64,000 nt of DNA from positions 70,590 to 134,589 of the forward strand of contig QPMI01000491.1 of assembly GCA_004431415.1 (NCBI GenBank). Reading direction: 5' to 3'. A program made the position numbers and the translations under genes. This document shows, one piece after another, positions 9,001-45,780 of the stretch (the stretch's first letter is position 1; the number at the start of each line of letters is the position of its first letter). The DNA comes from Cyanophora paradoxa CCMP329. Lineage: Eukaryota > Plantae > Glaucophyta. The notes under the pieces were generated by a model. The model saw nothing but the letters and a program-made list of their open reading frames with translations. It was not told where the DNA came from and did not search any database.

Positions 9001-11470
9001 GGCGTACGCGCCCGCCACCTGCTTCAGACCCTCCCCGGCCCCGTCTTCGCCAACGGCGCCCTGCTCGGTGCGCGCTCTGCGTCAATGCTTTAGACACGCT
9101 CATGGATGGAGCGTTAATGTTGGCTTTCACAGGCATGACGACGACGGTGAGCTGGTTGTAGCTTCGAGCCATCGACCCTCTCCGGGGTTTTTTTACACCA
9201 CTCGCAGGACTTGGCGAGCGGGGAGTCGACGACTGTCGAAGGAGTGCGTGCACGCGCAACGTGTTTTGGTACCCTCGAATTAATAATCGATTTCGCAGGC
9301 CATGCAGTTTAAGCCACGCCCCGTCGGTGTGTTTGCGAATCGATTCTGACACGACCGCGTGGCGGGGGACGTTCCATGATCGCGATAATGACATCCGAAC
9401 AGGCCTCGCGGCGCCAAGCTTCCCTCGCGTCGTGGCCACGACCTTCCGCTCCGTCTCCGTTGCGTTCACTGTCCCCGTCAACGAGGCGTACGACGTCGTG
9501 TCCGGACAGTCCATCCCGATCTCGAAGGTGCGTGAACTCGCTGCGGCGCGATTCTAGAGCTGACTCTTCAATTCTGGCCTAGTGCTCTCTGCTCTCGCTC
9601 GGGGTGGACTCGACCGGCGCGGAATCGGCCGCGGAGGTCGCCAGCGGCGTGCCGACGCGAGCGAGCGAGATGTCAATGATGGTGGACCGCCTAGCCGCGA
9701 ACACGGCCTACCGCATGGTCGCCGTGTGCAGCAACTCGATCGGAAGCAGCCCGCGGAGCGCGGTTGTCGCTTTCACCACGCCAGGTTCGCCGCCGCGAAC
9801 TCTAATAAATCTGACGCTGAAACTCACCCTCAACCGCAGCGATGGGCATCCAGCTGGACTTCGACTCAATCGGGAGCCTGAGCATGGACGGCAGCTTCGT
9901 CGCGAACGCGCCCATCAAGCTCTTCCCGCCCATGGCCGCCGCTGCCGACCGTCGGGCCTGCCTAGCGGGCACATTCTTCGCTGTCCCTCGCGTGAGTCGA
10001 ACTCAGAGAAATTAAGAGCCGGCGCCTTTGAATTTCGGGGGCTCAAATTTATCTGCAGGTCGAGATCGGGCGCTTCAGCCGAGGCTCCTTCACCGATGCC
10101 ATCACTGTCGACGCGTCGCTCAACCCGCCCATCCCAGAGAGGAGCACGGAACCCTCGACCTCCGTCTGTTTCGGTGAGCGAACGACATTATGATTCACGG
10201 AGCACGGAAGCCATTGTCGTTGATTATGGTTGTTCGGCACATGCGCAGTGATTCCAGCGAGTCCCTACGCGGCGTCCGCGCGCCCCGCGCGGCACCTGCT
10301 CGTCCTGTCGACGGGCGCCGCCCACTCGCTCCGCGTGACGGACGTGCAGACGGGCTCCAGCGTCGTCGTGCAGAACGTGCGCTATATTCTCTGGCATGGG
10401 AATGCGATACTTTGCCCTGCTCTGATTAGACTTCTTCGAATGGACGTTGACAGGCCGTCATTTGGCGACCGGCCGGCGCGATCGACGCCAACCGCACGGG
10501 GCTCAACTGCTCGAGCTTCGGCGCGATTCGCAGCTGCTCCGGCAACAAGCTCCGCCGCCTCTCGGCTCACTTGAGCTCCAATTCCACTGCGGACTTTTTC
10601 ATCGCGGGCACGTTCGGCGTCGTCCCCACCAGCGTGAGCTCGCGTGGCCCTCCGAAAGTGTATCCGAGCTGAAGTTGAAGCCGCTGCTCAGGTGATGTTC
10701 GGCCAGTTCGATCTTTCGACGGCTGCGGCCGTCTGCGCCCACCCCGCCGCAAACGTCCGCCTGTGCAACGGCGGCCTCTGCTTCGGTGCGCGAAACCGGC
10801 CCCAACCGCCCGCGGCCGCCCGAACTGACCGCCACGCTCGAGCAGACCTTCCGATGTCCCCTCCGTTGGACTGCGCCTTGGGCACGGGAAGAATGGCCGC
10901 GGGCCGCAGCCTTCTCCTCGCAAGCGAAAAGACGTACGACCTGCGCATCGATCAAGCCGACGGCGAGCAGACTCTCGTCACCAACGTGTGCCCGTTTATG
11001 CAGTTCATACACCTAGATCCGATAAAATCTATCACAAAGTCTTTTATTTATCTATCTAGATCTGCCAGCGCTGTTCACGCGATCCCGACACTTGCGCAGT
11101 TTGTGCAGTGGCAAGTGGCGCCGACGACTCTGTCGGCGTGGTCCGGATCGCAGGCTGCAGCCCCTCAGCCCGGAGGCAGCAACACGTCCCACATCGGACT
11201 CGGCCTCGGCCTCGGGCTCGGCCTGGTTCGCGTCGCACGTCCTGTACTCGTCCGACACCTCTGATCGACCTCTGCCTTCTGCAGGGCGCAGTGCTGCTGC
11301 TCGTGGGCGGCATCTGGGGGTACCACTACTATCGGCGCAGCAGCGCCCAGTGGAGCCGCAAGTCCCGTCCTAGGCCTGCAGCCGGCACCGGGGCCGACCC
11401 GCCGCCCCCATCCACCCTCTCGAGATCGGGCCGGAACGAGCCGCAAAATCCGACAACGATTTACATGTAG
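1..11470 (+). CDS. Giant multi-exon cell-surface protein (5' end outside window): at least 4 LamG/concanavalin-A-like jellyroll repeats, then FN3-like beta domains and a C-terminal TM helix
   Basis: Spliced exons repeat WYH(I/V)VI..DG....Y.NG and D/APYLTG..L.G.R.(W/Y)S..L...DV..LY...LYY.FD(D/E) near 145-640, 1640-2100, 2910-3345 and 4433-4920. FN3-like segments include LLPGTTYTVE.VACSNANG and LAANTAYRMVAVCSNSIGSS. TM segment GLGLGLG/AVLLLVGGIWGYHYYRR, ending TTIYM-TAG at 11468-11470. The internal exon structure is only partly resolved. Confidence 0.75.
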
Positions 11471-11761
11471 TTAGCTCCGACGATTGACATTCACATGCAT
11501 AAATGTGTAAGCGCCTCCCTGGCGCGTGCACGGGTACAAGACAGAGTCCTTGAACGGTGTCTGGTCCCGCGTGCACGTGTGTCGAGTTTCGAATATCAAT
11601 TCGCGCGTTGAGCGCACAGATCCGGTTTGACACGCTAGGGTTCTGAGCTTCGTGGTCTGAATTAAAATGGGCCGCCACGGCCCGCGCCGAGTCCCGATCA
11701 GATGGGCGCGCCCGGCCGCTGGAGCCGCAGGCCCGCGCAGCGCCTGTATAGGGCGCTCCAG

Positions 11762-14700
11762 TCAGCCGCGCCAGGGACGCGGGGAAAAGGAGGAGGGGTA
11801 CCGGGAGATCATGAAGAAGTAGAGGAGGAACAGGGCCCCTGAAGCGCGGCGGTGAGGCGAGAGGAAGGGGGGGTGGGGAAGCGGTCGGGGCGTACCGAAG
11901 AAAAGGGCGTTGAGGAAGCAGAGGCGGGCGGCCGCCGAACGGCGGAGGGCACGCCCCACCCGCGCCCTGCGCGCGCAAGCTTCAGAATTCGAAGGGGGGG
12001 TGAGGGGGTGTGTGGAGAGGGGTTTCGAAGGGGTACGGGTACGCACGTGCGAACGTCGAAGCCGCGGGCGATGCCGCGCACACGGCGAGAAGCGGCCGAG
12101 TCGGGACCCCCGAAGACTCCCCACGGCACCAGCGTCGCCGTGGGCCGGTACCCGTCCAGCTCTGCCGATACCGTATGCGTCGATAGAGGGATGGGGGGGG
12201 ATGAAGGGACGGGGGTACCGCGCTCGGAGTCGGAGTCGGACTCCTCGGGGTCCTCGGGGGAGGGTGCGAAGCCGACGTCACGGGGCCGCAGTTTCTTTTT
12301 TTAGAGAGGGGGGGGGTGAGCGGGAGCGGGGTACGCGAAAGGAAGGGGCGCACCCGGGCCTGGCGGTCGATGAGGGAGTGGAGGAGGGTACTCTCGGTGG
12401 GGCCCTCCTGCAGCCTTGAGGCGAGGTCCGAGGCCCGCGCCTGGGGGGGACGGATCAGGGGGAGGGGAGGTCCGGGGGGTACGCGGCGGACCGAGGAGCC
12501 GTCGAAGGGGGGTATGTCGAGGGCGCGGGAGGAGTTGGAGGAGGGGAGGGAGGGGGCGGCGCCGGGGATCGTCGGCTGCCCCGAGGCGTGCAGCCGCTGC
12601 AGCAGCTCCCGGCTGTCCGCCACGAGCCGCTGCGCCGAAAGTCAGGGGGGGGGAGTGGAGAGCGGCGCGGCGCCCCGCCCCCTGGGGGTACGGACGTCGA
12701 TGCGGTCCTGCTTGGCCTGGAGCTGCCCCTCGAGCTCGGCGCGCTCGGCGGCCCAGCGGCGCGCCTCCTCTTCCTTCTCCGCCAGCCGCCGCTCGAGGTC
12801 CGCCGCCGCGGGGGCCCCCGGCAGGCTCGCCGCCTCGGGGCCCCCCGGCGGGCTCCAGCCCACGGGCGTCCCCACCGCCCACCCGTCCGCCCCCCGGCTC
12901 GGCGTCGCCGGCTCGGGCGAGAGCTGCGCGGCGGTCAGAGGGGCGGAGCGCGCGGGGGCGGGGGCGGGCCGCCTCTCACCGGCGCGGCGCGGGCGGCTGC
13001 GGGGGTCGCCGCGGGGCGGCGGCGGCCTCCGCGGCCTGCGCCGCCGCCGCCGCCCTCGCGGCGCGCTCCGCAGAGGCGACGGCGGCGGCCTTCTCCCGCT
13101 CCAGGCGCTCCACCTCGTCCTGCCCCGCCCCGCCCTCGGTCAGGCGGGCGGGCGGCGGAGAGGAGGCGAAGCAGGGCCGGCCGGGCGCGCCTGGAGCTCC
13201 TTGGCGCGGGCGCGCAGGCGCTGGGCCTCGGCGGCGAGCCCCGCGGAGCGCTCGGCGGCGGCGCGCGCCGCCGCCTCGGCCGAGGCCTTCTCGTCCCGCG
13301 CCTGCTGGGCGGCGGCCTCGGCCCTGCGCGAGGACTCGCGCTGCTCCTTGAGGCGCCCCGCCAGCCGCTCGAGCTCCGCCGCGCGGCCGTCGAGCTCCGC
13401 CCGCAGCGCCTCGCGCGAGGCCCGCAGCGACTCGACCTCCTCCTGCCTCCCCTGCAGCTCCGTCGCCATCTGCGGACCCCTCAGCCCGATCCGAAGATAG
13501 ACGCAAAAGAGGGGGCCTGGGCGCACGCGGAGGCGCTCGGCGGCGACCTCCTCGACGGCGCGGCGCTGGCCCTCGACGGTGAGCCGCAGCTGGCCCGCCT
13601 CGCTCCGCGCCCGCTCCAGCTCCGCCGCCTCGTCTCCCATCCTGCCCGCCGCTAAGCACGCGCGCGGGCGCGGGCGAGGGGGTGTGGGGGGCACCGGGCG
13701 CGCTCGGCGGCGGCGGCGCGGGCGGCCTCCTCGCGGGCGCGGGCCTCGGCCTCCCTGCGGGCGGCCTCGAGGGCCGCCTCGAGCCGCTCGCGCTCGGCCT
13801 CCAGGCGGGAGGCCTCCTGGCTCTTCGCCATCAGCTTCATCGCCAGCTCCGACACGTTCAGGGCTGCCGCACGCGAGTCGGACGGGCCGAGTCGGGCCTA
13901 GGCGGGGGGCGGGGGAGCGCGCACAGTTCTGGTGGAGGCGCCCCGTGAGCTCCTCGGCCTCGGCCGCCGCGCGCTCGGCCTGCGCTGCGAGGCGCCCCCG
14001 CTCCGCCTCCGCCGCGTCCCGCTCCGCCGCCAGCCGCAGCGCCGCCTCCGCGTGCGCCTTCAGCTCTCGCCGCGCCGCCTCCTCGCGCCCCTCCGCCGCC
14101 GCCTCCCGCCGCCGCGCCTCCTCCGCCGCCCGCGCCCGCGCCGCCTCGGCCGCCGCGAGCTCGTCGCCCAGGCGCGCCATTTGCGAGCGGAGCCGCCCGG
14201 ACTCGGCCTCCGCCACCGCCAGCCGCGCCCGCAGCCCCGCCCCGCCCTCCTCCCCGCCCTCGCCCTCGCCGCCCTCGCCGCCGCTGCCGCCGCCGGCGCC
14301 GGCGGAGAGCGAAGCGACGAGCGCCCCGAGCTTGCCGCGCTCGGCGGCGAACTCCTCCTCGGCGGCGCGCGCCGAGGCGCGGGCCGCCGCGAGCGCCCCC
14401 TCCGCCTCCTCCACCGCCGCCATCGCCGCCACCGCCTGCCACCGCCGCCCCTTCAGAGGCGGGCTGCGGACGGCCGGAGGAGGGTACCGCACCCGCATCT
14501 CGGCGCGCTCGGCGCGCTCCTTCCACTCGCTGGGGAGGGTCTCGAACTCGGGGGCGCCGGCGCCGGCGGCGCCCGGCTCGCCCTTCAGCTGCGCCACGAT
14601 CCGCTGGAGCGCCGCCACCTCCTGCCGCCCGCACGGAGTGAGCCGGGGCACGGGCGGCCCGGCTCGGTCCGGCCGCGCGGCACCTGGCGCATGGTGGCGT

Positions 14701-21830: not shown

Positions 21831-22150
21831 TGAGTACCTCCGAGCTACAGCTGCATTGAATAGTAGACAATGTTATTCAATTAAATCGATGCTGTACAGA
21901 AGTGCTCTCATTAACCATTTACACCTAACATGAACAAGTATGTCGCTGCGTATTGGTGTCTATATATATATAGCTATCGAGTTAACGTTCAAGCTGCTAT
22001 GTGTCAAAGGAACATCGCATTTCAGAACAGGCAGAACACGCAAGTTGCCTTGAGCTTCACCGAACTTTGTCTTCGAAATTCCTCACTGACCAATTTGGGT
22101 CGACCGCTGATCATAAAAAGTTTGGGTCCGTTGACTTTGATTTACTTGAT

Positions 22151-25100
22151 TTACACCGGCGGCGCCGCCGGCGCCGCGGCCGGCTGGACGTCGACGCGGT
22201 TCGGGTTGCGGCGCCGCCGGACGACGATGACGACGACGACGGCGACAGCGACGATGGCGAGCACGGCGCCCGCCGCTCCGACCGCCGCCGCGATCGTCAG
22301 CGTGTTCGACGAGGACTCCGCGGCGGCCGGGATCGGGCTCGACGCCGGATTCGCGGTCCCGCCGGGGACCGGCGAGTCGACCGAGACGGGGGCGCTCACA
22401 GGCGCCGTCACAGCCCCTCGGAGGGCGCCTGCAGATAAGAAATTAAAGGCTTCGCCGTTGACGTCTACGCATGCGCACCGGCGTTCGCCACGATCTGGAC
22501 GCCCGTGACGCGGACGCCGTTGACGACAAGCGCGCCGGCGAGGGCCTTCTGCTGGATCGAGACGGCGAGCGCCTCTGCCGTCACGTTGCTCCCCGCCGCC
22601 GCCGTGACCTCGATCTGCCGCGACGTTTCAGATACACTTAAAGACTAAGCGATCGTGCCGTCTCACCGTGAGAACAACGGATCCCTCCCGTCGGCTGAGG
22701 ACCTTGAATCGCGATACCGGCACGCCCTCGAGCTCGGCGAGCCCCGCCAAGAACTGCGCGAAGGCGGCCACGGATCGGCGCCGCGAATTAATATTGGAGC
22801 AGGCACTCGCACGCACTCGCGCGTCGCTCGCGTTGGTCCACGTCGCGTAGTTGCCGTCGAGCACCAGCAAAAGCACGGAGGAGGTCGGGGCCGCGGCGAA
22901 AATGTCCGCCGAATTGACCTGGTATGCCTTCACGGCCGAGACCTAGATTGAAAACGGGCGGCTTGAGAAAGCAACGAACGTGCCATGATGCACAGACAAA
23001 GCGTAAGATACTTTCGCACCATCGCCGCCCATCCCTGGGACTGTATGACGCCGTTGCTCTGGAAACGGATCACGAGCTTGCTTCCAAGGGACTGCACTGC
23101 TGGTGGCGGGAGCTCCGGGCTCCCTAAAAAGCAGCCATCAGGGAAAGAATAGTATAAAGCAAATTAAATTAAAGGGATCCGTGAACCTGAAATATTGAGG
23201 AGAAGATCGGCGTTTTGCATGGGTTGAAGAGTACCAGTACTGGTGCTGACTGTCCCGTTCGCCGCATTCGAAGTCGACGTCGTCGCATTCAAAAGTCGAA
23301 CTTCTTTCGCCGCGATCGAGCTCGAGGCCGTTGAAGCGAGCAGACCGGACACCATTGTGTCGATCACCTGCCATTGTACAAGTCGAGCGCGCAAGATCTA
23401 TAGCTATATATAGCTAGAGCCTCGCACCTGAAGAAAGTCGACGCCACCCTCAGTCGACAGGAACGTTGTGTTGAAAACAAGCGACGCTCCCACGGGTCCC
23501 TCCACCGTCCTAAATTAAAGGGGATGTGATCATGAGCTAACTTAGTTAACGGGTTCCATCAATCACAATCTAGATCTTTGCCCACCAGGTGCACAGCGCG
23601 TCCGGGAGATACGTGAAGGAAGATTCTTGCCCGTTGCTCGCGACGGCGACGACGCTCCCGAGCTTGTCCAGAGCAAGCTTGATTTCGCCGTTGCACGCTT
23701 GCTTGTCTGCAGCAACAATCGATATTACATCCACAATCACAGTCAGAGAATTGAGGCCGACCTTTCCTATAGGAGGCGCGGAAGCCCTGGAAATTGTTGA
23801 CGCGGTCAGAGGTAAATGTCACGTAGGCTCGCCCCGACGAGGCGGCGACCGCCCGGCCCTCGGGATTCACAGCGCCCGAAATCTCGGCGATCAAGCGGGC
23901 GTCGGCGCTGGGCCCGTCGTAGACGCGGATGAGGTCTTGGCCGGGCTCCGTGTCGACGAAAGTGAAGTTGAGGAGAATCGATCCGTTGCCCGGCGGAGAA
24001 ACGAGCCACGCGCAGAGCGAGTTCTCCACATACGGCTGGCTTCCGGAGCCATCGTCGAAGGTTCCTTCGCTAGTGTTTAACTGCGTAAGGCGCGCGCAGA
24101 GCTGCTCCGGAGGCGGGACGTCCCAATACTCGAAGAGGAATCCTTCGCCCGTGTTCGCAGCGTTGGACACGAAGTACACAGTGAGGGCAGTGATGCCCTC
24201 CGACGAGATGAACGACGTCTGATTGAAGGCATCACCGGCGCTGGTTCCGACGGTGCTGGCGTTGTAGGACCCGGAGAACTTGCCAAGGATGGAGCCCTTC
24301 GTCGAGGCGCCGTCGATGACGGAGACGAAGTCGAAGCCCTTCTCGAGCGCGAGCTCGCGAAGCTCGACCCGCACGCGCCCACCGGAGCTCGAGTGCACCA
24401 CCCTGCGCAGGACCGAATCAGAACCGCGCAGGCCAGGCCCGGGCAGGTGAGGAAGGAGACCAAGCGCAGGCGGTCTTGTCGGAGTAAGGGCGGTCGCCAG
24501 ACCCATCCGTGAAGTTGCGGCGCTCGAGGGTCGCGTTGAGCGTCTGCGCCGCCTCGCAGTAGCGGACCGTGGTGTACGTGGCCTCGAAGCCCTGCAGCGG
24601 CTCGAGGCCGGATGATTGGAAGACGACCCTGACGCTGGAGCCCGTGGACTCGTAGAAGAACGTGTTCCGCTCTGTTGTGTTGCCACGGACGAACGGGCCG
24701 GAGCGCTCCGCTGCCGCCACGTAGCTTCTCCCTGCTTCCCGCTTCAGCGGTGTGCCAAATTTCTATAATTTAGAGCTGCGATCTAGAGCCGCGGCACCTT
24801 CAAATATGGTGATCGTGGCACCACCCGCCTCCAAGTCAATGAACGTGAAATTCAGTTGCAGGAAGCCGGGGGAGTCCGTTTTCAGGACCCTGCGCAGTTG
24901 AAAATGGAATGGTCAGATCTCGCGATCGTGCAGCTAGCCGAATTGCAATTCGGAGTTCGAGTGAATCGGATGGTATATACCATGAGCAGAACGTTTCCGG
25001 CCTGTACAGAGCGTCCCCGGAGCCATCGTTGAACGAGCCCGAGCCGGCAGGCTCGATGCGGCGCCTCGCGCAGTAGGGCGTTGATTTGGCTGCTCGCGCG

Positions 25101-28100
25101 TCAAGACAGCCTATATTCGTCAAAGAAAGGCAATAGACCGGTTTTGTAAGTCGCTGTGAATCCGTTGCTGAGCTCTGCAAGGCTTCCAGAGACGAAGGTG
25201 ACGGTCATAGCACTTCCAGACGAGCGGACGGTGAAGGGAACTGACGGCGTTCCAGAGGTCCTGTTCAAAAGAGTAGCCGATGTATCTGGGCCGTCATAAA
25301 TCTGGGTTCAAGAAATGAGGAGACGATTGAATCTGGCCATGGAGGCCAAAAGTGCTGGAATCGATATCGATGCTCACCCTCACAATGCCGCTATCAGCTT
25401 TCGTTGCGAATGATGTGAAGGTCAATTCTATCGGAGATTGACTGGTGCTCACAAGTTTCCTGAGAACGCAGATGTAGAATTTTTCGAATCAATGGAGTTT
25501 TTGAGGAGACCCATGGCCATGCAAAAATGACGCACCACTCGCAGTTAGTATTTGTCCCGTAATTAAAAGGACCGCTACCGTCGCTCAATGTGCCCTCTGA
25601 GTACACGTATATTGTTTCTGAACCCTTGCAGAACTGGTAGTAAAAAAGAGTGAAGCCGCCAGCGCGCGTATAAGAGTCGGAAGTCCATGTCACGAGCAGA
25701 TAGTTGGACGGATAGGCGAATAGCCTCGAAGGCGAAACCCGAAAGATGTTGGGGGTATTGGTGCCAACTCCAACATCCGTGCCCAGAACACCCGAGGCTA
25801 CGTATGATTTGTTGACCCTTCCATCGACCATGTGGAAAACCGTAACGAAATCGTATCCTGCGAAAGCTTTTGATTCGCGCGCTGAAAAGATTTGAATTCG
25901 CAATCGTGAGATCGTACCCTTTTCGGTGCTGAGATTGTCGAAAGACATCACCACATCGCCAGTGCCGGGTGGCATAATGGCCCAGTTGCACTCCATGTTG
26001 TCGATATAATTTCGGCGAGGACCGCTACCGTCCGTCACGCTCCCCGAAGGGCCAAACAGTTTGACCGGCCGGGAGAGCGAGGAAGCGCAAACTGCACCAC
26101 CGCACGCGACGGCATCTTAGATGACATATATTCACGACGATATATATAATTAGATATACGAATACTTTATTGACGCACGTGGATTATAATCAATTGAGAT
26201 GCCAGCAGCAGCAGTCGTCGATTCCATGCCGAAGCGAAGAATTAAGGGGAAGCCAGAGTAGGGAATGTCCCAGTAGAGGTCTTCAGTCAGAGCAGGGTAG
26301 ACTATCCAACGCCCCAGCCAACGGCGATCAGTAGTAGTACGGCGAGTGCAATCTTCGGTCGTGTACGTGTACGAGCGCTTGTACCACGGCGCCCACGAGT
26401 ACGGAGCATACGTCCCCGTCACCGTATTCTCCTCGCAGACTTGCAGCATGTCGTCAGGCCCTGTTGAGAGGAATCACCGTCTGTCGGGTCTCCGGATCCA
26501 TCGGAAAACGAAAGAGAGCACCTAGCACTGTTCCTTCTTTGAAAGTGACATATCCAGTGTTCACTCCGTAAAGAATGAACTCGCATTTCTGCGAGGTACC
26601 ATGAGACGACTTCGCTCAATGCGATGTCTGACCTATAGCTACGTACCAGTCCCTCGGTGTAAGGGAAAGGCCCGCTGCCGTCTGTGATTGTGGCTGCCCC
26701 CCAAACGCTTGCGCGTCCGTTGCACATTTGCCACCACGTAAGAGTAAAGCCGTTGGCTTCCGTATTTGCGGCAGAATCGCTCGTGAAGAGCACGAACACT
26801 TGGGTTCGCTTGGTCGAGCTTGATATATAGTCTGTGTAGACTGGCGTCAAGCTCGAGCTAGGAATGATCATTTCGGCCACCGAAGGGTAGCCGGAGTCAA
26901 AAACCTGATCGATATGAAATTAAACGTGAGTTCGAGGTTAATCAATGCAATTGAAAAACTGGCAAAGCAATGCGATGCGAATTCCATTGGGGAGCCGCGC
27001 ACCTGGAGCGTGTCGCCAGAGCCGAGAGACTTGCTGATGTTGAATACGATTGGCCCCGTTCCGAGAGGATTGATGATCCACCCGCACTTTGTCCCGGGGC
27101 GGTACTTCGAGGCCCCGCTTCCGTCTGTGATCGTTCCGGACTTCGCGAAAATGTTTGATCCTTCAGGCACACGCTGGATCCCATCGCAGAAGACCTTCCC
27201 TCCGATCGCTGTTCGACCGGTCTCAATTGAGAGCTCAAGCTAAAGGGTTTAAGCCTCCTTTTGCTGAGTGCTAGCTATAGCGTGCGCGTGCGAACGCACC
27301 GACGGAGACCGTCACTGATATCTTGATGGAAGAGGTGAGGTCCAAAACGTCTGTTGCTGTGATTGTGAGCTCAGTAGTGCCGACGGAAGCAGCCTGGTAG
27401 CTAGGTCAGAAACGCTGCAGACAGATGCGCGGCAGATCCAGATGCAGACGCGGAGCTTTCAGGATCACCTTGAAGCCGAGCATGAATTTATGATCGGGAA
27501 ATCTCTCGAGGAGATGATAGTCTTCGATCGTCAGAGACGAAGAGGAAACCACTGACTCCGCAGAGCTTTGTACGGTGAAGGTCATCTCGTCCGGGAACTG
27601 GTCCGACAGAATTTCGAAAAACTCGAACGCTGACTGATCAAGAGGCGTGGTGATAGTTGTAGGGGCTCCCCTGAATCTCGGTGCTGCATTCGATTGCAAG
27701 GCTTCAGAAAGGCTTTCCTTCGATTGAGTTGAGCACCACTAGCATACGCATGCGCACGATTTGCGATAAGGACAGTGATCGTCCTCCGGCTTGTCTGCCC
27801 GATGTAGTCGCGGGCCGAAAGAGTGACCACGGCCGTGCCCTTCGCATTTTTCACTGTTTTGAGAATGACCTTCCCACTGTCGATGCGAGCCGTGACGCTG
27901 GAAGAGTCCGACTCGACGCGCAATACAAGCTCTCGCTTCTCACAATCGAAGATGGCACAGAGAACTGTATTCCGCCGCTTGGCTGTGAATGCAACTGGCA
28001 GCTCCGTAGCTACAGCCTCGTCCGAGCGAAGAGTGACGAAGTCGGACTCGAGCGAGAGCTCCGGGGCTGCCGTGCCAGAAACAGCTTGAGTTTATTTTGA

Positions 28101-30992
28101 AAGATATATAAATAATATTAATAGTCTAGCGGTCGAGGGAACTGAAGATCTAGAACCGGTCGAACCTTTGAAGGTCTGTAGGGAAATCCATGGTTTTTCT
28201 GCGTCCATTATCGCCACTGTTGCCTTCGGAGAGTACTGCGTACGCGCGGGTGCAATGAGGAACGCTCGCCCGCGGCCGGTATTCAGCACGAGAAAAGCTT
28301 AAGAAAAGAGAACCTTCGCTAGTTGCGTTTCTTCCGTCCATAGCTTGATTCCTGTCCAGCCGAAATCCCATTTCGGGCGCTGGAAATTGATCGTCGCGTT
28401 GACGCGGGTCGCATTGGATTTAAAAATTCTGGCAAAGACGCGATGTGCTGTCAGACACAGGGATCCGAATAGAGGACTGAGCGGGTAAACGTCGCACCCA
28501 ATTTGGATATCTTCAGTGCCGGCAACGGGCTGAGCTGACAAAGAGCCGCCGTAGTAGTAGGAAAACTCGACTGCTCCCATTACTCCCAGAGCAAAGTCAA
28601 ATTCTAGCGAGAAAATCTTCCAGCCAAGACGCTTTCGGAACTTGGGAAGCCCCGCATACAGCTGGATCTCGACGGCGGGACCTGCTCCTGCAAACATCTG
28701 GAGCCCTGATCATGACCATGAAGCTCTAATTAGTTCGATGTTATTGCAACCCGCTGGGATCCGGCGAGGCGCACTGTTGGATCGAACGTCCAACCTAGGG
28801 CCAACAGTTTGCAAATCGAACTTGGATGTGCCATACGGCTGGTGAAAAATGGCGAATAGGACCGTTTCAGAGGATCAGAACGTGAAGAACAAGTATTCGT
28901 AAAGATTAAATTTCGAGGCTAAAAGGCAGACCGTCCAGGAATCAGTACGCTTTGAATACTCAATTCCCATTTCCGTCTCGAATGAGAAGAATATTCCAAA
29001 AACGAGGCGAGCCTCCGCCTACATCAGCACCAAAATTGAGCAAGATCAGCACACGAGCCAAACGTGAGTCGACAAATTATACTTTCTTGAGCACGTATAG
29101 CATGAGTAAAATCAAAGAACACGCATATATACATGGGATAAAACTTTATTCGATCCACAAATTTAAAGATAGATCGAGACTCTGAGAGGTTACCTGAAGC
29201 TGATTCTGGAACAAAGCCTTCGCCTTCAACACCGCCGCCACCGAAATCTCGAAGATGCCGACAAACGTCTTCGCGACAGTAAACGACTTGCTGGCGAGCA
29301 GCTTCTCCCTTTCAACTTCGTTGATGTTGATGATCGTCTCGACGGTGACATTTCCTTCTCCGGTCCCCTTGACGCCGAATTTGGCGGACGTCGGGGGCTC
29401 TAGCGAAGGAGCCACGATGAGACAAGATCACAAGATCGAGCTTGCGCGGGCGATGGCCATGGCTTGAATATCAATTTCGCACCTTCGCTGGATGCGCTGT
29501 ACTCGATGACGACCGCGAGCTTGGCTTCCGCGTAGCACCCCAGGCAGTTCACCCTGTACGAGACCATGGGGACCTGCGCATGTGCAAAACACCGTGAGGC
29601 AGATTTACATTGCACTGGTACTGGCTTCGCTGCGCGCCTCCGGATCTTCGTCGAGGTCCTTCTTGGCGGCGGTTGCGGTCGCCGCGGTCTTCGTTTGTGT
29701 CTGCGACTGCTGGCTTCTCTCCCGCGCCTCCTTCAACTCCTTCACGACGTCGATCACAGCCTCCTGGGGCCCCCCGTTCGCATTCTGAGAGAATGGATTG
29801 GGGAAATACTAATTAGATTAGAGCATACGAAGAGATGCAGAGCTAACGCGCCCTGTTCCACGCGTATGTGTAGACGGGGATCTCCCACCGCTCGGCCAGG
29901 TGGCGGCGCCCGCGCGCCGCCGTGCGGCGCCTCTCAACCGGCGAGCCCTCCCCCTCTTGGTGCAGCTGCTGGCTTTCCAGGCGGAACGAAATGTGCTCCG
30001 CGCAGTCCTGCTCGTCGCAAGTTCGAGGTCAATTTTAAGAGACAGCAGCTGCAGGTAGATGCGAGGGGTAAATTGAATTCAAACTCGCTCACGAGGACAT
30101 TGGCGACGATCACCCGGACTCGGATCTGGCTGGCGTCGAGGCCGGTTTTGGGCTCAGCGACGATGCGGAGCGTGATGGGGCCCTCTTCCCCGACGAAATC
30201 CAGGCACTCCCAGCCGGAGCTCGCGTGGAGGACGGTGCGGAAGGGGGCGAGGCGGGCCGCGAACGCGGCGGCGTCGGCCGGGGACGCGAGGCCGAGGAGG
30301 AGGAAGCCGTCCTGCAGATCGGAGCAGGAGAGCGCCTGGATGGATGGAACGAGGTCGAGGACGATGCAGAGGGGGTTCGGGTTGTCGATCCGGTATTCAA
30401 CACGATGGTACCTGCCGCGAAACTTGAAACGATCACGACGTCGACGCTCATATGTATGCCTATGCCTATGCATATGCATATGCATGCGCAATACGTATAC
30501 GTATACGTATACGTATATGCATGTACACGTATACGTACGCGTATATACCTATACGCGCGCAATATTAATACGTACTACGGTATACGTATACGTATACGTA
30601 TATGTACGTATATGGTACGTTCATACGAATATTAATATACGTGATTAACTATAATGCCGTGTGCACGTGATGCATGACACTCACCGACCAGCTTCGTCCG
30701 TGTCCGTTGAATCGCTCGAGAATACCAGCGGCTGGCCCCGCGAGCCGGGGCTCTCGTCGAATCGCTTCGTGCTGATGCCTGAGCCTAGGCCTCCGGCTGC
30801 AGTCCCCGCCCCCGGGCTGGCGCCAGCCGACTCATAAAAGGACAAGATGCGCTGCACTTCGTCCGGCTCCTTCCCCGCAAGGACGTACGAGGGGTCGGGC
30901 CGGCTGCCTGCCGAGCAGTGCTGCACGATCGCTGCGACAAGGCACGCGTACAGAAGAACTCGGCCCCGCCAAGAGTTCGAGAGCAGAGACAT
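22151..30992 (-). CDS. Giant type-I membrane protein: signal peptide, unknown beta-rich N-region, Ig/cadherin-like segments, about 8 CUB domains, SEA-like segment, TM helix
   Basis: Signal peptide MSLLSNSWRGRVLLYACLVAAIVQHCSA. The CUB motif G.(I/F)TDGSG..Y....C.W.I appears near 27130, 26690, 26040, 25590, 25035, 24510 and 24060, with a degenerate copy near 23650. Other hallmarks are TEKGYDFVTV, TEPGQDLIRVYDG and REGSVVLT. TM LTIAAAVGAAGAVLAIVAVAVVVVIVVRRRR; TAA at 22151. That the 28-31 kb part belongs to the same gene is inferred. Confidence 0.75.
30450..30643. repeat. Intronic alternating purine-pyrimidine microsatellite (TATACG)n/(TATGCA)n
   Basis: atacgtatacgtatacgtatacgtatatgcatgtacacgtatacgtacgcgtatatac...; related tracts at 31277-31350 and 37766-37822. 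Confidence 0.85.
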
Positions 30993-31439
30993 GGTTTCCG
31001 ATGTCAAAGTTGCCAAGTTGCAATTCTCAACGGCTATAACAATTGCGCGAGCGCATTAGCGCGAGCTAGCTATAGATCTAGAGCTGTCTGCTCAGCAGCT
31101 AGTCGCGATCGACTGCTGCTTCCCGGAGTCCGCTGCTTCCGATATCGATATCGATCGCGATCGCGAAGTTCCACTAGTGCAGCTGCAGGAGTGCAGCGCG
31201 CGCAGCGCTACTAGGCTAGCCCGGGCGTGGCTGACTCAGTGAGCAGTGCCACGGTGAACAGCCCGCTGCACGCCGCACGTATATATACGTATAAACGCGT
31301 AATCAAACTACGTATATATACGTAATCTACGTATATATATACGTATAAACGCAGCTAGTAGCCTAGTAGCCTAGTAGGCTAGCTGCCGCACTGGCGCAGT
31401 GCATGCATGCGCGCGCGCGCAGCGCCGCGCACTACTATA

Positions 31440-31717
31440 CTGTAGGAATGCTTAAATTGCCGCGTATTACGGTAGTTAAATTGCCGAATTTGACCAAAAC
31501 CGGAATTGCCGTGGCCATGGCGAATCATTGGCGATACGATAAATTGCCGAATTCGAAACTCTGGATTTCTTCTATGGCGCCAATGCCGCGCCATACAAAA
31601 GCGGCCATTTAGCTCTACCCCCTGAGAATTGCCGTGGCTTAAAATTGCCGAATTCGGCCTCTAGACCTCGGCAATATCCGGCAATTTAAAACATCGGCTA
31701 AAAAAGCATTCCTACAG
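31440..31717. mobile_element. 278-bp non-autonomous MITE, TA target-site duplication (Tc1/mariner-like)
   Basis: Perfect 14-bp TIRs CTGTAGGAATGCTT (31440-31453) and AAGCATTCCTACAG (31704-31717), each flanked by TA. Six internal AATTGCCG motifs plus two inverted CGGCAAT near the right end. No coding capacity. Confidence 0.85.
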
Positions 31718-33535
31718 TAGTAGCACTGCCGCAGTGCACGTGCGGCCCAGTCGACGTCTGAACGTGAATTCGAGTCCCCGGCCGCGGCGAGTCGCCGGCG
31801 ACTCGATCCCCGCCGGCGCCGACTGCCAGGCGCCGGCTGCCCGGCCCGGCCGGCCGGCGCCGGCTCGGCGCCGCCGGCGGCCGCGGCCAGTGACGGCCAC
31901 CGTGCAGTGCGTGCACGTACGCGCGCGGCGCGCGTGTCCGACCGTCGGACGCGTACGGTCGTGCAGCGACGTCACGCCGACGTGCACTCATACGCGGATA
32001 CTGAAGATCTAGAATGAATGAGCGAATTCGATTTGAAGATCTCGATCGCGCGACGAGTCCGCCGACGAGTCGGCGACGACTCGGCGCGGCGATCTCGCGT
32101 TAATCGAAAATCTTGATCGAGAATCTTTTGGGAAACATTTGAAGATCGCGTGCGGATCTTCCGAAGTTCGACGATCATCGGATCGTGATTCGTGATCATC
32201 GGATCGATGATCCGATGATCATCGGATCACGAGTCGATTGAACTCGATTCACGACCAGTCGACGTCTGGCATGGCAGCATTGGCAGGTGACCTCAGGGCC
32301 TGCAGGACACCCGGTGACCTGCCGCGGCCTTCAAGGCTTGACACGGCCCACGTGCACACCGTCCGGTCTCACACCGACTCGGCGAGTCACACGGCGTCGT
32401 GACGGCGACGCCTCGAGCTCATCGCCGAGTCGACTCCTCGTGACGGCGAGTCGATCGCGACCGGATCAGCGGCCGATGAATCCGATCGGAGATGTTCGAG
32501 TTCGAATACGCCCGAGACCGCTAGCCACGGGCCCGGGGGCGGACGCCCCTCGGGCTGCAGTCTCCGCCCCCGATCGCGAGCCGCGACCCGAGGACCGAGG
32601 TTTGCATGATCCTCGATGCGATCGTCTAGATCTCGAGCTCGAACATCGTCCGACACTGTGAGTATGTGACAGTCGCGGCCCGTGATCGCGATTCGCGAGC
32701 TCGAGGGCCCGCGCGCGACCCGCGGGCGCCGGCCGCCGGGCCTGCATGCGCAGCTGCATGCTCCTAAAAAAATCGACACCAGAATTGTTTTCGAATATGA
32801 AATGAAAACTCCGGCCAGGAATTCGAAGTTGCGTTTACGAAAAAATGCAAATTAAAGCTCGAGCCGGTCACGAGTAGAGTCGCGGCGGTGGCTAGCGCTG
32901 TCATGGGATCAATTGGAAGAATATTAATATAGATTCGATTCACCCTCGCACGCGAGGAAGAGGGGCGCGCGGCCCGCACGGGGCGACTTCGACGGCTGTA
33001 CATGTCAAGAATTCGCGTGCGATCGCGAGGAACTCGGAACTCGGAAGAACTCGGAACTAACGGCAGGGCTGTCCCGATCGCGATCAAGAATCACGCGAGG
33101 AAGATCGAGAGGGCTCCGCCGGGCCGGGAAGTTGAAGCTTCTAAGAGGAGCTTAAATGATGCCGACCTTGACAACTACGCACCAATATTAATATTAATAT
33201 AGCGCTGGCGCCTGATGCAACGGCACGAGGTAGAGTGCAGGTCAATTGAATTTAATTCAAATAAAAAGAAATTAAAGCGAAAGAAATCAAACCAGGGGAC
33301 CGGGGCGCGGGGGGGCCCCGCCCCTACTGGCCCCCTAGACTCTGAGCCTCGAGGACTAAAGCAACTTATATCAGTAGGCAACTAAAAAGCCTTCAAAAAC
33401 GCACAAGCGGTGAAAAGCCCTATAGCTAGCTGTAGCTAATCACATACCTATACACATACAGCCTACTACTACGTATACTTAAGAACTTAAGGAATTCTAA
33501 TCCGAAGACGGCTTGTACGTTTCGGACGGCTAGCG

Positions 33536-35315
33536 CTATGCGGGGAGGCCGGCATCGATATCGGAGGAGCGAACGGAGGCGATGAAGGCGGCCGTCGAGC
33601 TCCCCGCGATCTCCCTGCGCGTGCGAGGCTCGGGGCTCGAAGGGGGCGGGGGGGAGTGGGGGTGGAGTGGCGGACCAGAGGGCGCGCATGCGGCGGAGGG
33701 CCTGCGGGGGCCGCGGGGACTCGGCGGCGGGCGCCTGCGAGCGGAAGGAGGCCATGAGGCAGCCCAGCGCCATGCTCAGGTCCGACAGGTCCCCCGCCCC
33801 CACCCCCTGCCGCACCCTCCCCGTCAGCCTCCGAAAAGGGGGGGGGAGAAAAGAGAGGGGGGTAGACCTCGACGCCGTCGGGTGCGGGGCAGCAGTAGGA
33901 TCGCTCGCGGTGGCCCCTGCGGACGAGCGCGCGGTACCACTCCACAATGAGGCGCCCGTCCGCCCCCATGCGCGGCTCCTCCTCCGCCGCCGCCGCCGGG
34001 CCGGGACTCCAGCAGGGGCCCGCGCCCGAGCCGGGGCCCCCGGGCGTCCGCGGCTCCTCGGGCGCGGGCGCCGCCGGATCGAGGCAGCCGCGGGCGGCGC
34101 TCAGGACGCGCGCGATGGTGACGACCGCCTGCTCCGCCACTGCCCGCTCCGCCGCCAGCGCCGTGCTCACCTGAGGCCGCGCGGGCTCAGGGACGCTGAG
34201 GAGGCGGCGCGGCGCGGCCTCGCGGATCGGATCGGACCTCGCGCGCCACGTCCGCCGACGCGTCTGCGATCGCCTCCTCCGAGGCCCGCAGCACCGCCTC
34301 CCGCTCCGCTGCGCCCGCCCCCCCCGCGCCTCAGCCCGCTGCTCAGCTAAGGAAAAGGGGGCGGGGGACGCGCCCTCGAGCCTCGCCACCTCGTTCTCCG
34401 CCTCCTCGGTCTTGGCGGCGTACTGCGATCGGGCCGGGCGGGGCCGGCGCGCCTCAGCGGGGCGCCCGGCGGCGGCCACGGGGGCGCTCCCTGCAAGCGC
34501 CGACCTCGCGCATGAGGCGCTTGCAGTCGCGGAGCTCGGCCTGGGAGGCGGCGAGCTCGCGCTCCATCTCCTCGGCCCGCTGCGCCGTGGAGAAGAGGCG
34601 CGCCTCCGTGGAGAGCAGCTGCTCCTGCAGCGTCGCCTGCGCCTGCGCGGCCGGCGCCGGCGGAAAGCGCGGCTCGAGAGGACTCCGGGAGGCGAGAGGA
34701 GGCGGGGCGGGCGGCGCACGGCCTCGTGGCAGCGCCCTTTCTGGAGGAGGACGGAGACCTCGTCCTTCAGGCGCTCCGCGTCGTGCCGGATCGTGCGCGC
34801 GCTCGCCCCGTTCGCCCCGCAGCTCGTCCTGCCGGCCGCCGCCGACGCGGGGAGCTGCCGCTGCGAGATGCGCCGCTGCGAGATGTGCCGCAGGGAGGCC
34901 GCGAGCCCCTCGGCGCAGGCGCCGGCGCCGGCGCCGCACGCGAGGTCCGCCCCGGGCCCCGCCTCGCGCTCCACGTCCTCCCGCCGGACGAGGCCGTCCC
35001 CGTCGGCGTCGAGCGCCGCCACGACGTCCGTCACCTCATCCTCGCTCAGGTCGTACGCCGCCAGCACATCCCTGCGCCCCGCCGTCAGCCCCCGCTCTCT
35101 AGATCTCCAGCAACACGGCGGGCGCGGAGCGCAGGAAGGAGGAGGGGCGGATCGGTTTGTACACGCATGCAAAGGCCCGTTTTAAGGTCTAGCCCGTCAT
35201 GCGGGGCGCACCGGAGGCGCGAGACGGGGATGGCGGACTCGTCGCCGGGGAAGAGCGCGTCGACGACAGCTGCGGCCGGCGCGTGCTTCTTCGTCGGCGT
35301 AGCTAGCGATGGCAT
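33536..35315 (-). CDS. EF-hand-like motif + coiled-coil protein of unknown function, multi-exon
   Basis: DVVAALDADGDGLVRREDVE is an EF-hand-like loop. Coiled coil ATLQEQLLSTEARLFSTAQRAEEMERELAASQAELRD. Ends MRALW|EIAG...GLPA*. The start codon is uncertain. Confidence 0.6.
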
Positions 35316-42155: not shown

Positions 42156-42208
42156 AGTCGAGGGGGGGAGAAGTGACAGGGGGGGACAAAGCGGAGGTCG
42201 CGGCAGCT

Positions 42209-44409
42209 ATGGAGCAGCTCGACTACCGGAACAAGGCGATACTGGCGCCGATGGTCCGCGTGGGGTGCGTGCATCGCCCCGCGCGCTGCGCGGCTGCCGG
42301 CCGCGACCCGAGCCGGCGCTGCAGGACGCTGCCGATGCGGCTTCTGTCCCTGGAGTACGGAGCAGACATAGTGTGTGCGTGCTCTCAGTCCCCGTTGGGC
42401 GCCCCGTAGCTAAGGCCTGGACCTGAGCGGCGCGACCGGGCCTCGTATGATGCCCGCGGGCCGCACGCGCCGCTGGCGCCGCGCTCCGCGTAGCAACGAC
42501 CTAGGATAGCCGCGCATGCGCCTCCCTCTCTGCGCCGCGGGGCGGGCCGGGCGCGGCGCTGTGGGCTAGCTCGGGCTGGCCCCTATCCGAGCGCCGCGTC
42601 TGACGCAGCGGCGCCGCGCAGACTCCGAGGAGACGATCGATAAGAAGCTCATCGGCTGCGACCGCATCGTGAACGGTGCGCTCCGCGCCGCGCGCCGCCT
42701 GCGTGGATCGCCGATGGGCGCCCGCTCCCCGCGCGCAGAGGCGCTGAACACGGTGGACTACATACACGCGCGCATGGGGAACCACGTCGTATTCCGCACC
42801 TGTTCGCCTTCCCGGCTTCCCGGCCGCCCTCCTCCCTGAGCCCCGCGCAGCGCCGAAGGAGCGCGGCCGCGTCGTCCTGCAGCTCGGCACGGCGGACGCG
42901 GCGCTGGCTTTGAAGGCCGCCCAGGTCGTGTGCGCTCCTTTCCCGTACCCCTCGCCCCGCCCCGCCCCGCCCGGCGCTCACGCCGCGCCGCCCGCGCGCA
43001 GCGAGAAGGACGTCGCTGCGATTGGCGCGCCCGACCGCCCCTCTCGCCTCCGTCCTCTGCGCCTTTTTGACGCTCTACCCCCCAGACATCAACATGGGCT
43101 GCCCTAAGAAGTTCTCCGTCGTGGGGGGTATGGGCTCCGCCCTCCTGTCCCAGCCCGAGACCGTCCGCGACGTGCGTCTTGTACCCCTCCGAATCCCCTT
43201 CTCGGTTCGGTTCGGTTTCGCCTCGGCCGATTTCGGTCCCCCGCCCGCAGATCGTCACGACGCTGCGGCGAAATCTCAGCGTTCCTGTAACCTGCAAGAT
43301 CCGCTTGAAGGCGCGCCGCCTCCCATACCCCCCCTGCCCCACGCCCCGCCTCATCCCGCCCCCCCCCTCCCCCCCCCTCTTCCCTCCAGGATCGCCTCGC
43401 GGACACGATCGACCTCGCGAAGCTAATCGAGGGCGCCGGCGCCGCTGTACCCCCCTCCCCTGCCTCCGTCGCGTACCCCCCTCGCCGCCCGACGCCCCCG
43501 GCAGGCGCTTGCGGTGCACGCGAGGAGGATCCCCGAGCGGCCGCGGGACCCGCCCCACCTCGACGAGCTCGCCGCCGTCTGCTCCGCCCTCTCCGTACCC
43601 GTCATCGCCAACGGCGCGCGCTGCACCCGTACCCCCCCGTCCCCCCGCCGCCCGGCGGGCGCGGCTGACGGGGCCCGGGGGCGCCGTGCAGGGGACATCT
43701 GGAGCCTGGCGGACGCGCGGCGGGTGCGGGAGCAGACGGGGGCGGCGGCGGCGATGTTCGCGCGGGCGGCGCAGGAGAACCCGTCGTGCTTCCGGGCCGA
43801 GGGGCCCCTCCCCGGCCTCGACGTCGTCGTCGCCTACGTCAAGAAGGCCGTCGAGTGCGAGTGCGCCGCCCCGTACCCCCGCCGGCTTCTTCCCCCCCCC
43901 CCCCCCCCCCCCCGCGGGCTTCCTCCCCCCTCCTAACTTCTCCCCGGGGCAGCGCGTACTTCCAGAACACCAAGTACGTGCTCATGCCGATGCTGAGGGC
44001 GGCGTCGAAGGGGACCACGCCCCTGGCCGAGGAGGCGAGCGGGCCGCCCTCCCGCCCCCGCGCCCGCGCCGTCGATCCTTCCGTTCTGACGTTCCCCCGC
44101 AGATCTCGCACGCGCGGTCGCTCTCGGATGTCTGCCGGGCCTTCGACCTGGAGGGGTACAGGGAGGAGTTCCAGCGGCGGCTCGCGGCGGGGCGGCCCCT
44201 CCTCGAGGAGCAGGGCGCGCCCCCGTCCCCCCCGATCAGATTCTAGTCGCCGAGTCACTCGCGATCGGTTGCTGAGCCGCGCCCGGCCCGCAGACGACAC
44301 GTGCGGGGAGGTGGCGGCTGCGAAGCGGGCGCGGGTGGAGGGCGCCGAGTCGCCCGCGGCCCCGGCGGGCGCGAGGCGGCCCTCCGACAGCGCCGAGGGC
44401 GGCGGCTAG
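42209..44409 (+). CDS. DUS2: tRNA-dihydrouridine(20) synthase, Dus2/Smm1 family
   Basis: [42 protein letters not shown]...VVLQLGTADA...IDINMGCPKKFSVVGGMGSALL...PVTCKIRL...ALAVHAR...PVIANGD...MFARAA. Confidence 0.93.
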
Positions 44410-44657
44410 CGAGCCAGCGTGACCGCGTTAGGGTTATCTAGCTAGTCCACAGAAGTTTGGCAGATAGGAACCCCTATGAGACTTCCTCTCGATATCGATG
44501 GCGAAGAGCGCGCGTCCAAGGGGCCAACCTGGGCGAGCGCCGACGGGAGTACTTGTGCGCTGCAGCGGGCGGGGCTTGGGCTATCGATATCATAGTTTTT
44601 GAAGGCTACGGACACACACTACGGAGAAGTACATGTACAGGGGCGCGCGGGGCCTGC

Positions 44658-44723
44658 AGCGGCGTTCCGCGGGGCGGGTTCCCTTGGAGGGTATTCCCCG
44701 CCTCGCATCAAGTGTCGCTCGCT
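44658..44723 (-). promoter_or_regulatory. Type II SECIS element in the SELENOK 3'UTR (UUGA core variant)
   Basis: Minus-strand RNA: AGCGAGCG acac UUGAU GCGAGGCGGG gAAUa CCCU cca AGGG aa CCCGCCCCGC GGAA CGCCGCU. This gives helix I, a UGAN/NGAN core, a 10-bp helix II with one mismatch, an apical AA and a helix III. Confidence 0.8.
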
Positions 44724-44866
44724 CGCGGAGCGTAGCGAGCGAAGCTGCGGTGGCCCGCGGTGGGCGGCTAGCGCCGCCCTCGGCCCCGGGGCTCGAGGAT
44801 GGCGCGTGCGGAGTGGCGGGCTTGAAGCCCGCACTCAGACGCTCGCGCCGGATCGAGTCCCGGGGC

Positions 44867-45417
44867 TTACCGGGCTCATCCGCCCCCCTGCAGGGCGGTG
44901 TGAGGGCCTGGGGCGCGCACTCGCGCGCGGGAGAGACAGAGGGCAGCGCGAACCATTCCCGGCGGGCAGTTCTGTGCGGCGCCGAGCCCCTTCATCGTTC
45001 CTAGCCTCATTCCTGGCCTCCCGTTACCGCCGCCGCCACCGCCACCACCACCGCCGCCGCCGCCGCTCTTTCGCCTTGAGGTCGGCGCGCGGATCAGGAC
45101 GGCCGCGCACGGGGGTAAGGAAGACTGGAAGGATGTAAGTCTATCGTTCGCATCCCCTCGCACGGCCTAGCTAGTGCTCCAGCGATGCGCGGCGAGTGAT
45201 GACGTAGCAGGGCGCACCGCAGCGCGTCGGGGTCGACGCTGGGGTTGATGAAGGTGGAAACGAGCAGCTGCCTGCAAGAGCGGGTGAGAGACGCGAGCGG
45301 CGCTGCGCAGGGCGGGGCTGACAGGAACGCGACGAAGGCCCAGAACCAGCCGATGAGGATGCCCACACCGAACGGGCGCTTCCGTTTCAGGTCGCCAGAA
45401 CCACTTATGTAGGCCAT
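44867..45417 (-). CDS. SELENOK: Selenoprotein K (SelK/SelG family), 96 aa, Sec encoded by UGA at 44876-44878
   Basis: Exons 45417-45323, 45271-45218, 45074-44954 and 44887-44867 (all GT-AG) give MAYISGSGDLKRKRPFGVGILIGWFWAFVAFLQLLVSTFINPSVDPDALRRKS(G)nNGRPGMRLGTMKGLGAAQNCPPGMGGG-U-AR-TAA. This matches the SelK layout: M.YIS, TM helix with FW, Gly/Pro-rich tail, GGU two residues before the stop. Confidence 0.9.
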
Positions 45418-45780
45418 GGCGGGCCCGGATGAGCACGGCTAGGCCAGCCACGCCTCGATCCTCCCCCCCCCCCCCCCCCTCGTTCGCCTGTGTACGCGGC
45501 ACGGTCCTCGTATCCAGCGGCTCGTGTAAAGGTGCGCTGCTCGCGCTACATTCTCCAACGCCCTGCATTGCAATTTCAATTGCTAACGTATACATTCCAA
45601 GAGGTGCACCGTGTCTGGCCGCGAGAGCTTGGTTAACGCGTTGATCTAGATGTGAAAGAATTCGACGTCGAAGGAAGGCGAGGTGTGAAGTCACCGCCTT
45701 GACGTATGCTGTTGGGAATATCGTTTCTCACGTTCATTCCGCGTGCTTGCCAGCTGCAGGCCGCAGACCCGTTCGTGAGC

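Follow-up and report, generated by a model that had tools for sequence, protein, structure and literature searches.

Few selenoproteins are as widespread as selenoprotein K (SelK, SELENOK; PMC2375036), and its presence in an alga that uses selenocysteine (Sec) is therefore expected. SelK and SelS belong to a family defined by an N-terminal transmembrane (TM) segment, a Gly/Pro-rich, positively charged tail, and Sec as second or third residue from the end (PMC10650576). The SelK proteins of animals, Dictyostelium, and Ostreococcus have about 95 residues, a single N-terminal membrane helix, an FW motif, and a Gly-rich basic tail, in which Sec occupies the third position from the end (Sec92 of 94 in human) and is followed by one variable residue, Arg, and the stop codon. 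Their 3' UTR harbors a SECIS element and a hairpin just past the stop codon, which has 8 bp in human (PMC6844570). An endoplasmic reticulum (ER) location and a role in ERAD or palmitoylation (acylation) are known from work on animal SelK.

SelS, which is about twice as long and contains a coiled coil, pairs a cysteine of its tail with Sec (Cys174-Sec188). On its mRNA, a stem-loop termed SL1 follows the UGA at a distance of 9 nt; it was initially described as promoting Sec insertion (PMC3628699); later, deletion of SL1 was found to increase Sec insertion (PMC6844570). This proximal stem-loop (PSL) is 34 nt long and acts together with a SPUR element. The mRNA of selenoprotein N (SelN) likewise has a stem-loop shortly 3' of its Sec codon; this element, the Sec redefinition element (SRE), belongs to the coding sequence, begins 6 nt past the UGA, and has been tested experimentally.

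In glaucophytes, tRNA-Sec is kept (PMC13578239, PMC3531208), and SecS as well as eEFSec are listed for Cyanophora paradoxa (supplement of PMC6627142). SBP2 was noted as missing from the old, fragmented assembly of this species (Liang 2019; PMC6627142). As tRNA-Sec, SecS, and eEFSec have already been reported, a working Sec system in C. paradoxa is expected rather than discovered here. The selenoproteome of the lineage was called very small on that old, fragmented assembly (PMC7539508, PMC6627142).

The locus described below lies on the minus strand of a 64-kb stretch of C. paradoxa DNA, referred to as the window. With a probability of roughly 0.92, it is the SelK gene of the alga, with the UGA at codon 94 read as Sec. 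It shares with the SelK genes listed above the length, the single N-terminal helix, the FW motif, the Gly-rich basic tail, the position of the UGA, the Arg-stop ending, and the arrangement of SECIS and hairpin in the 3' UTR. It differs by Ala instead of Gly after Sec, by a run of 13 Gly, by a hairpin of 33 instead of 6-9 bp, by a U in front of the SECIS core, and by a Cys eight residues before Sec (Cys86 and Sec94), whereas the tails of the marine relatives contain no Cys. The gene is an additional member of a well-known family and is easily overlooked: callers that take UGA for a stop would cut three residues and with them the active residue. A corrected gene model may add SelK to the selenoproteome of this lineage.

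A spliced transcript with UGA and SECIS

The ATG, the in-frame UGA, the UAA, and the SECIS element are all located on one four-exon spliced transcript (Table 1). The reading frame comprises 291 nt, i.e. 96 codons and the UAA, with codon 94 as its sole in-frame UGA. Four GT-AG exons and a frame of 96 codons, in accordance with the 96-residue protein of the original prediction, are thus borne out, the joints of introns 1 and 3 being read directly in contigs and that of intron 2 being deduced from length. The ending proposed there, GGG-TGA, is right when read as the residues Gly-Gly-Gly and wrong when read as a codon: the frame closes with GGG GGC GGA TGA GCC CGG TAA, so that GGA directly precedes the TGA.

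Table 1. Features of the SelK locus, with positions in the window
Feature	Position	Strand	Content or basis
Exon 1, coding	45323..45417	-	Met1 to Leu32, phase 2; N-terminus of SelK with the larger part of the membrane helix
Intron 1	45272..45322	-	51 nt, GT..AG; joint in X1, X3, X12
Exon 2	45218..45271	-	54 nt; rest of the helix, juxtamembrane segment
Intron 2	45075..45217	-	143 nt, GT..AG with AAG acceptor, CTGAT branch-like motif; contig arithmetic and frame
Exon 3	44954..45074	-	Gly-rich basic tail, RLGTM motif, Cys86
Intron 3	44888..44953	-	66 nt, GT..AG; joint in X1, X3
Exon 4, coding part	44867..44887	-	Gly-Gly-Gly-UGA (predicted Sec94, 44878-44876)-Ala-Arg-UAA
Proximal stem-loop	44783..44866	-	33 predicted pairs
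Upstream hairpin	44715..44742	-	Alternative pairing for the helix I 5' arm of the SECIS; minimum-energy UTR folds
SECIS element, type 2	44658..44722	-	Folding, spacing, core
Distal 3' UTR	44574..44657	-	Contig ends in X1, X3, X12, X13

The transcript evidence comes from assembled contigs of sequencing runs (X1, X3, X12, and X13). In each of X1 and X3, which belong to two studies, a contig of ~625 nt spans all four exons and skips exactly 66 nt at intron 3 and 51 nt at intron 1. Both runs are presumed to be RNA, and the lack of introns in these contigs speaks for it; several presumed RNA runs contain ~45% of the words present in the stretch. At intron 2, a GGC repeat beside the intron was passed over by the alignment, and the joint follows from length: in X1 as well as in X3, 56 contig letters separate the flanking pieces and correspond exactly to 45018-45073, which identifies the unusual AAG acceptor at 45075 as the one used. 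Among other candidate acceptors, those at 45124 and 45067 break the frame, and those at 45140 and 45065 are at odds with the 56-letter gap.

A transcript ending before the SECIS hairpin had been named beforehand as an observation that would count against the gene. A single contig instead runs from the ATG to 44574-44578 in X1 and X3, about 80 nt beyond the SECIS. Judged by the contig ends in X1, X3, X12, and X13, which do not define exact termini, the transcript ends near 44574-44584. The contigs of X12 and X13 show no sequence differences from the window and hence no covariation.

The high GC content of the window and its short introns agree with the values given for C. paradoxa (PMC6627142). 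The lengths of introns 1 and 3 are divisible by three, and neither intron contains a stop codon, so that retention of either would preserve the reading frame along with the Sec codon; among the contigs, no intron-retained form is found. A run of ~23 G (minus strand, window 45457-45479) lies just upstream of the 5' region of the transcript.

Family assignment and relatives

Profile and homologue searches were performed exon by exon or with reading frames as they stand in the genomic DNA, and the joined protein was translated for frame, length, and hydropathy only. The sole Pfam family matched by exon 1 is SelK_SelG (PF10961; profile positions 1-31 of 86, E 0.0017); with 19.4 bits for this exon alone, the score stays under the cut-off of 23.3. 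In the ESM Atlas, the three matches listed for exon 1 are all SelK_SelG clusters, the best of them named 'Selenoprotein K' (0.83, a lead only), and the search with exon 3 yielded no match. Although below the cut-off, the match of exon 1 to the SelK profile sets the gene apart from SelS. Residues 18-36 of the predicted product form its one hydrophobic window (Kyte-Doolittle mean, 2.25), and its last 46 codons comprise 48% Gly, 13% Arg and Lys, 7% Pro, and no acidic residue. The product predicted from the 96 codons thus displays the TM segment, the basic Gly-rich tail, and the Sec position by which the SelK/SelS family is defined. Together with the UGA as third codon from the end (94 of 96), a position shared with six relatives, these features sustain the SelK identity originally proposed.

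Direct homologues of exon 1 are hard to find. Searches with this exon gave no candidate sharing words, a single repeat protein (phmmer), and no related metagenome locus, and no glaucophyte or close algal orthologue emerged from the word-based, phmmer, and metagenome searches. With a pattern derived solely from exon 4, 120 metagenome loci were retrieved, mostly by chance, with one clear SelK among them (L028; Pfam E 4e-12). This locus led to 23 further proteins, most of which carry the SelK Pfam mark. Five relatives with full transcripts (L121 and L123-L126) have a SECIS-like hairpin 76-155 nt downstream; they share one spliced leader, presumably appendicularian, and represent one clade rather than independent cases. 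Their called genes end at the UGA and are thus truncated, as the original prediction expected of automated annotation. Including L028, all six relatives end with GG-UGA-Gly-Arg-UAA, each accompanied by a SECIS-like hairpin. Orthologues that fail to conserve the UGA and the two codons after it had been put forward as a ground for rejecting the gene; in these six, the order UGA-x-Arg-stop is kept.

Exon 3 aligns with the relatives' alignment around the RLGTM motif (hhalign, probability 82, E 1e-5). When shuffled sequences were compared with the relatives' profile, 1 of 500 equalled the score of exon 3 and 0 of 500 that of exon 1; exon 2 alone was not significant (79 of 500).

Several metagenome genes are SelS-like or have Gly/Pro-rich tails, namely L047:13231-14001 (-), L069, L081:2441-3628 (+), and L012:582-950 (-). 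They end with GGG-UGA-x-Arg-UAA and resemble SelS-type genes by their tails; each has a candidate SECIS of the GUGA type and a strong hairpin that opens 1-2 nt past the stop codon. Pfam recognizes none of them. Four SelK proteins from the database (P0003, P0005, P0006, and P0015) carry an insert of 15-17 residues directly after the membrane-helix motif. It resembles a translated in-frame intron and is located near the site of intron 1 in the C. paradoxa gene.

The hairpin behind the stop codon

The proximal hairpin, which the original prediction did not mention, opens at the first base after the UAA, 9 nt past the Sec UGA, which is the distance of SL1 in SelS and falls in the 6-9 nt range of the SRE and related stem-loops; it is a predicted UTR element, unlike the SRE of SelN. 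Its 33 pairs have a mean pair probability of 0.96 and a z-score of -4.6. Among 1903 GC-matched 90-nt segments of the window, it is the most stable, and it occurs there in single copy. Searches against Rfam returned weak matches to miRNA models only, with scores far below gathering, and a miRNA identity was rejected.

Stems at this position have precedent. A stack of at least 7 bp opening at most 4 nt from the stop codon is present at 8 of 10 SelK/SelS loci, which are not mutually independent, versus 10 of 103 chance loci. Judged by eye, paired changes occur in the relatives' short stems (6-9 bp). Taken together, the position has precedent, the length is unusual, and a putative regulatory role is suggested. 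During decoding, the hairpin would probably be placed at the mRNA entry of the ribosome and may tune Sec insertion versus termination. A long hairpin at the position of SL1 offers a test case for the role of proximal stem-loops in mRNAs of proteins with a C-terminal Sec.

It is nearly as plausible, at somewhat less than even odds, that the hairpin is unrelated to recoding and represents a chance GC-rich fold, a decayed inverted repeat, or a small-RNA precursor, with the gene and the SECIS unaffected. The great excess in length over the 6-9 bp stems of SelK relatives and the weak miRNA-model scores would fit such an origin, as would the ~10% of chance loci that carry a 7-bp stack at the same spot; furthermore, a tagged reporter did not respond to deletion of the 8-bp proximal stem-loop of human SelK (PMC6844570). 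The exact start at the first base past the UAA argues against it, as do the rank as the most stable, single-copy segment and the frequency of such stacks at SelK/SelS loci, bearing in mind the interdependence of the latter.

A far-reaching scheme can be built on a regulatory hairpin. The SelK mRNA would regulate itself: the 33-bp hairpin would stall the ribosome, the second hairpin would switch SECIS helix I, and both would set the ratio of the 96-residue Sec form to the 93-residue form. The Sec form would close an intramolecular ring between Cys86 and Sec94 like SelS, and the proximal stem-loop would be ancient in SelK and SelS messages across eukaryotes. As a whole, this scheme is doubtful. 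The ring by itself is possible by analogy with SelS; for human SelK, an intermolecular diselenide is reported. What this locus adds to a regular SelK gene is modest and open to experiment: the long hairpin, the U-preceded core with its contested helix I, and a Cys close to Sec.

The SECIS element and predicted decoding of codon 94

The SECIS consists of helix I, a core of U and UGAU (U of the UGA at 44710), an 11-nt helix II, unpaired AA (44695-44694), a mini-stem of 4 bp, and the 3' core GGAA (44668-44665). It starts 144 nt after the stop codon, in good agreement with the ~145 nt originally given, and its core UGA follows 156 nt after the stop. Published searches require the pattern NUGA..AA..GA with spacings of 10-13 and 15-39 nt as well as an upper stem that is stable (PMC2375036); here the spacings are 11 and 25, and the upper stem has -21 kcal/mol, in line with these requirements. 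On both strands of the window (128 kb), it is the sole SECIS-like match as compared to 0.15 per shuffled window, with a filter that was tuned with the candidate already in view. The SECIS families of Rfam gave no match to the locus, even at E 10.

Two features of the element are atypical. First, the core is preceded by U (44711) and not by a purine. The base in this place is A in most and G in some SECIS elements, and published searches allow any base (PMC2375036). Relative L124 likewise has U at the matching place; its SECIS (L124:428-478, +) is part of a SelK transcript that carries the spliced leader. Second, helix I is contested. While helix II has a pair probability of 0.98 in the fold of the full UTR, helix I forms in the isolated SECIS, and its 5' arm is captured by the hairpin at 44742-44715 in the full-UTR fold. 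Enforcing the classical helix I costs ~12.7 kcal/mol relative to the competing hairpin, in folds that take no account of G-A pairs or SBP2. In human SECIS elements, swaps of helix I have little effect on strength (PMC2761289). The contested helix I may bear on efficiency more than on identity.

Both features were weighed as signs of decayed Sec use, with the UGA as a true stop after 93 residues, the SECIS as a relic, and Cys86 providing the redox function. A U before the core, a helix I sequestered by the competing hairpin, a Cys close to the C-terminus, and the reported lack of SBP2 in the old assembly would all agree with such a decay. It is nevertheless improbable: the UGA is still followed by two codons, Ala-Arg, and the UAA, a layout kept in relatives that use Sec, the SECIS is intact in its core, spacing, AA, and helix II, and a U before the core is shared by L124 and accepted by the published searches. 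An exon model that arose as an artefact of GC-rich DNA and resembles SelK by chance is extremely unlikely: the low-complexity Gly run, the sub-threshold Pfam score of exon 1, and the lack of a direct homologue in its word-based and phmmer searches are countered by exact GT-AG joints in two studies, which refute an artefact, by a frame closing on GGG-U-AR-stop, and by the position of the window's sole SECIS-like match in the same UTR.

The UGA at codon 94 of the SelK gene is almost certainly read as Sec. According to established biology, SBP2 would bind the SECIS at its kink-turn core, and eEFSec would deliver the Sec-tRNA, so that codon 94 would be read as Sec in some translation events. The remaining events would stop at the UGA and give a 93-residue form; some termination at the UGA is also reported for overexpressed human SelK. 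Junction-dependent decay is not expected, since the UGA is located in the last exon. The predicted product crosses the ER membrane once and has an exposed Sec and a disordered cytosolic tail rich in Gly and Arg. By analogy with animal SelK and SelS, it would most likely take part in protein quality control at the ER (ERAD), as a redox or adaptor partner, or serve as a helper in acylation.

ARAGORN detects no tRNA gene in the 64-kb window. A gene for a dihydrouridine synthase (Dus, ~42170-44510, +) is oriented convergently with SelK, and an RNA-type contig of this gene stops at 44501-44509, ~65-75 nt from the end of the SelK transcript. A SepSecS Pfam match in a neighboring ORF (E 0.035) was discarded, as this ORF belongs to the Dus gene. 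Elsewhere, the GC content drops to 52-63% at positions 1-12000 and 22000-34000 of the window, compared to a background of 68-80%; these regions are possibly mobile elements.
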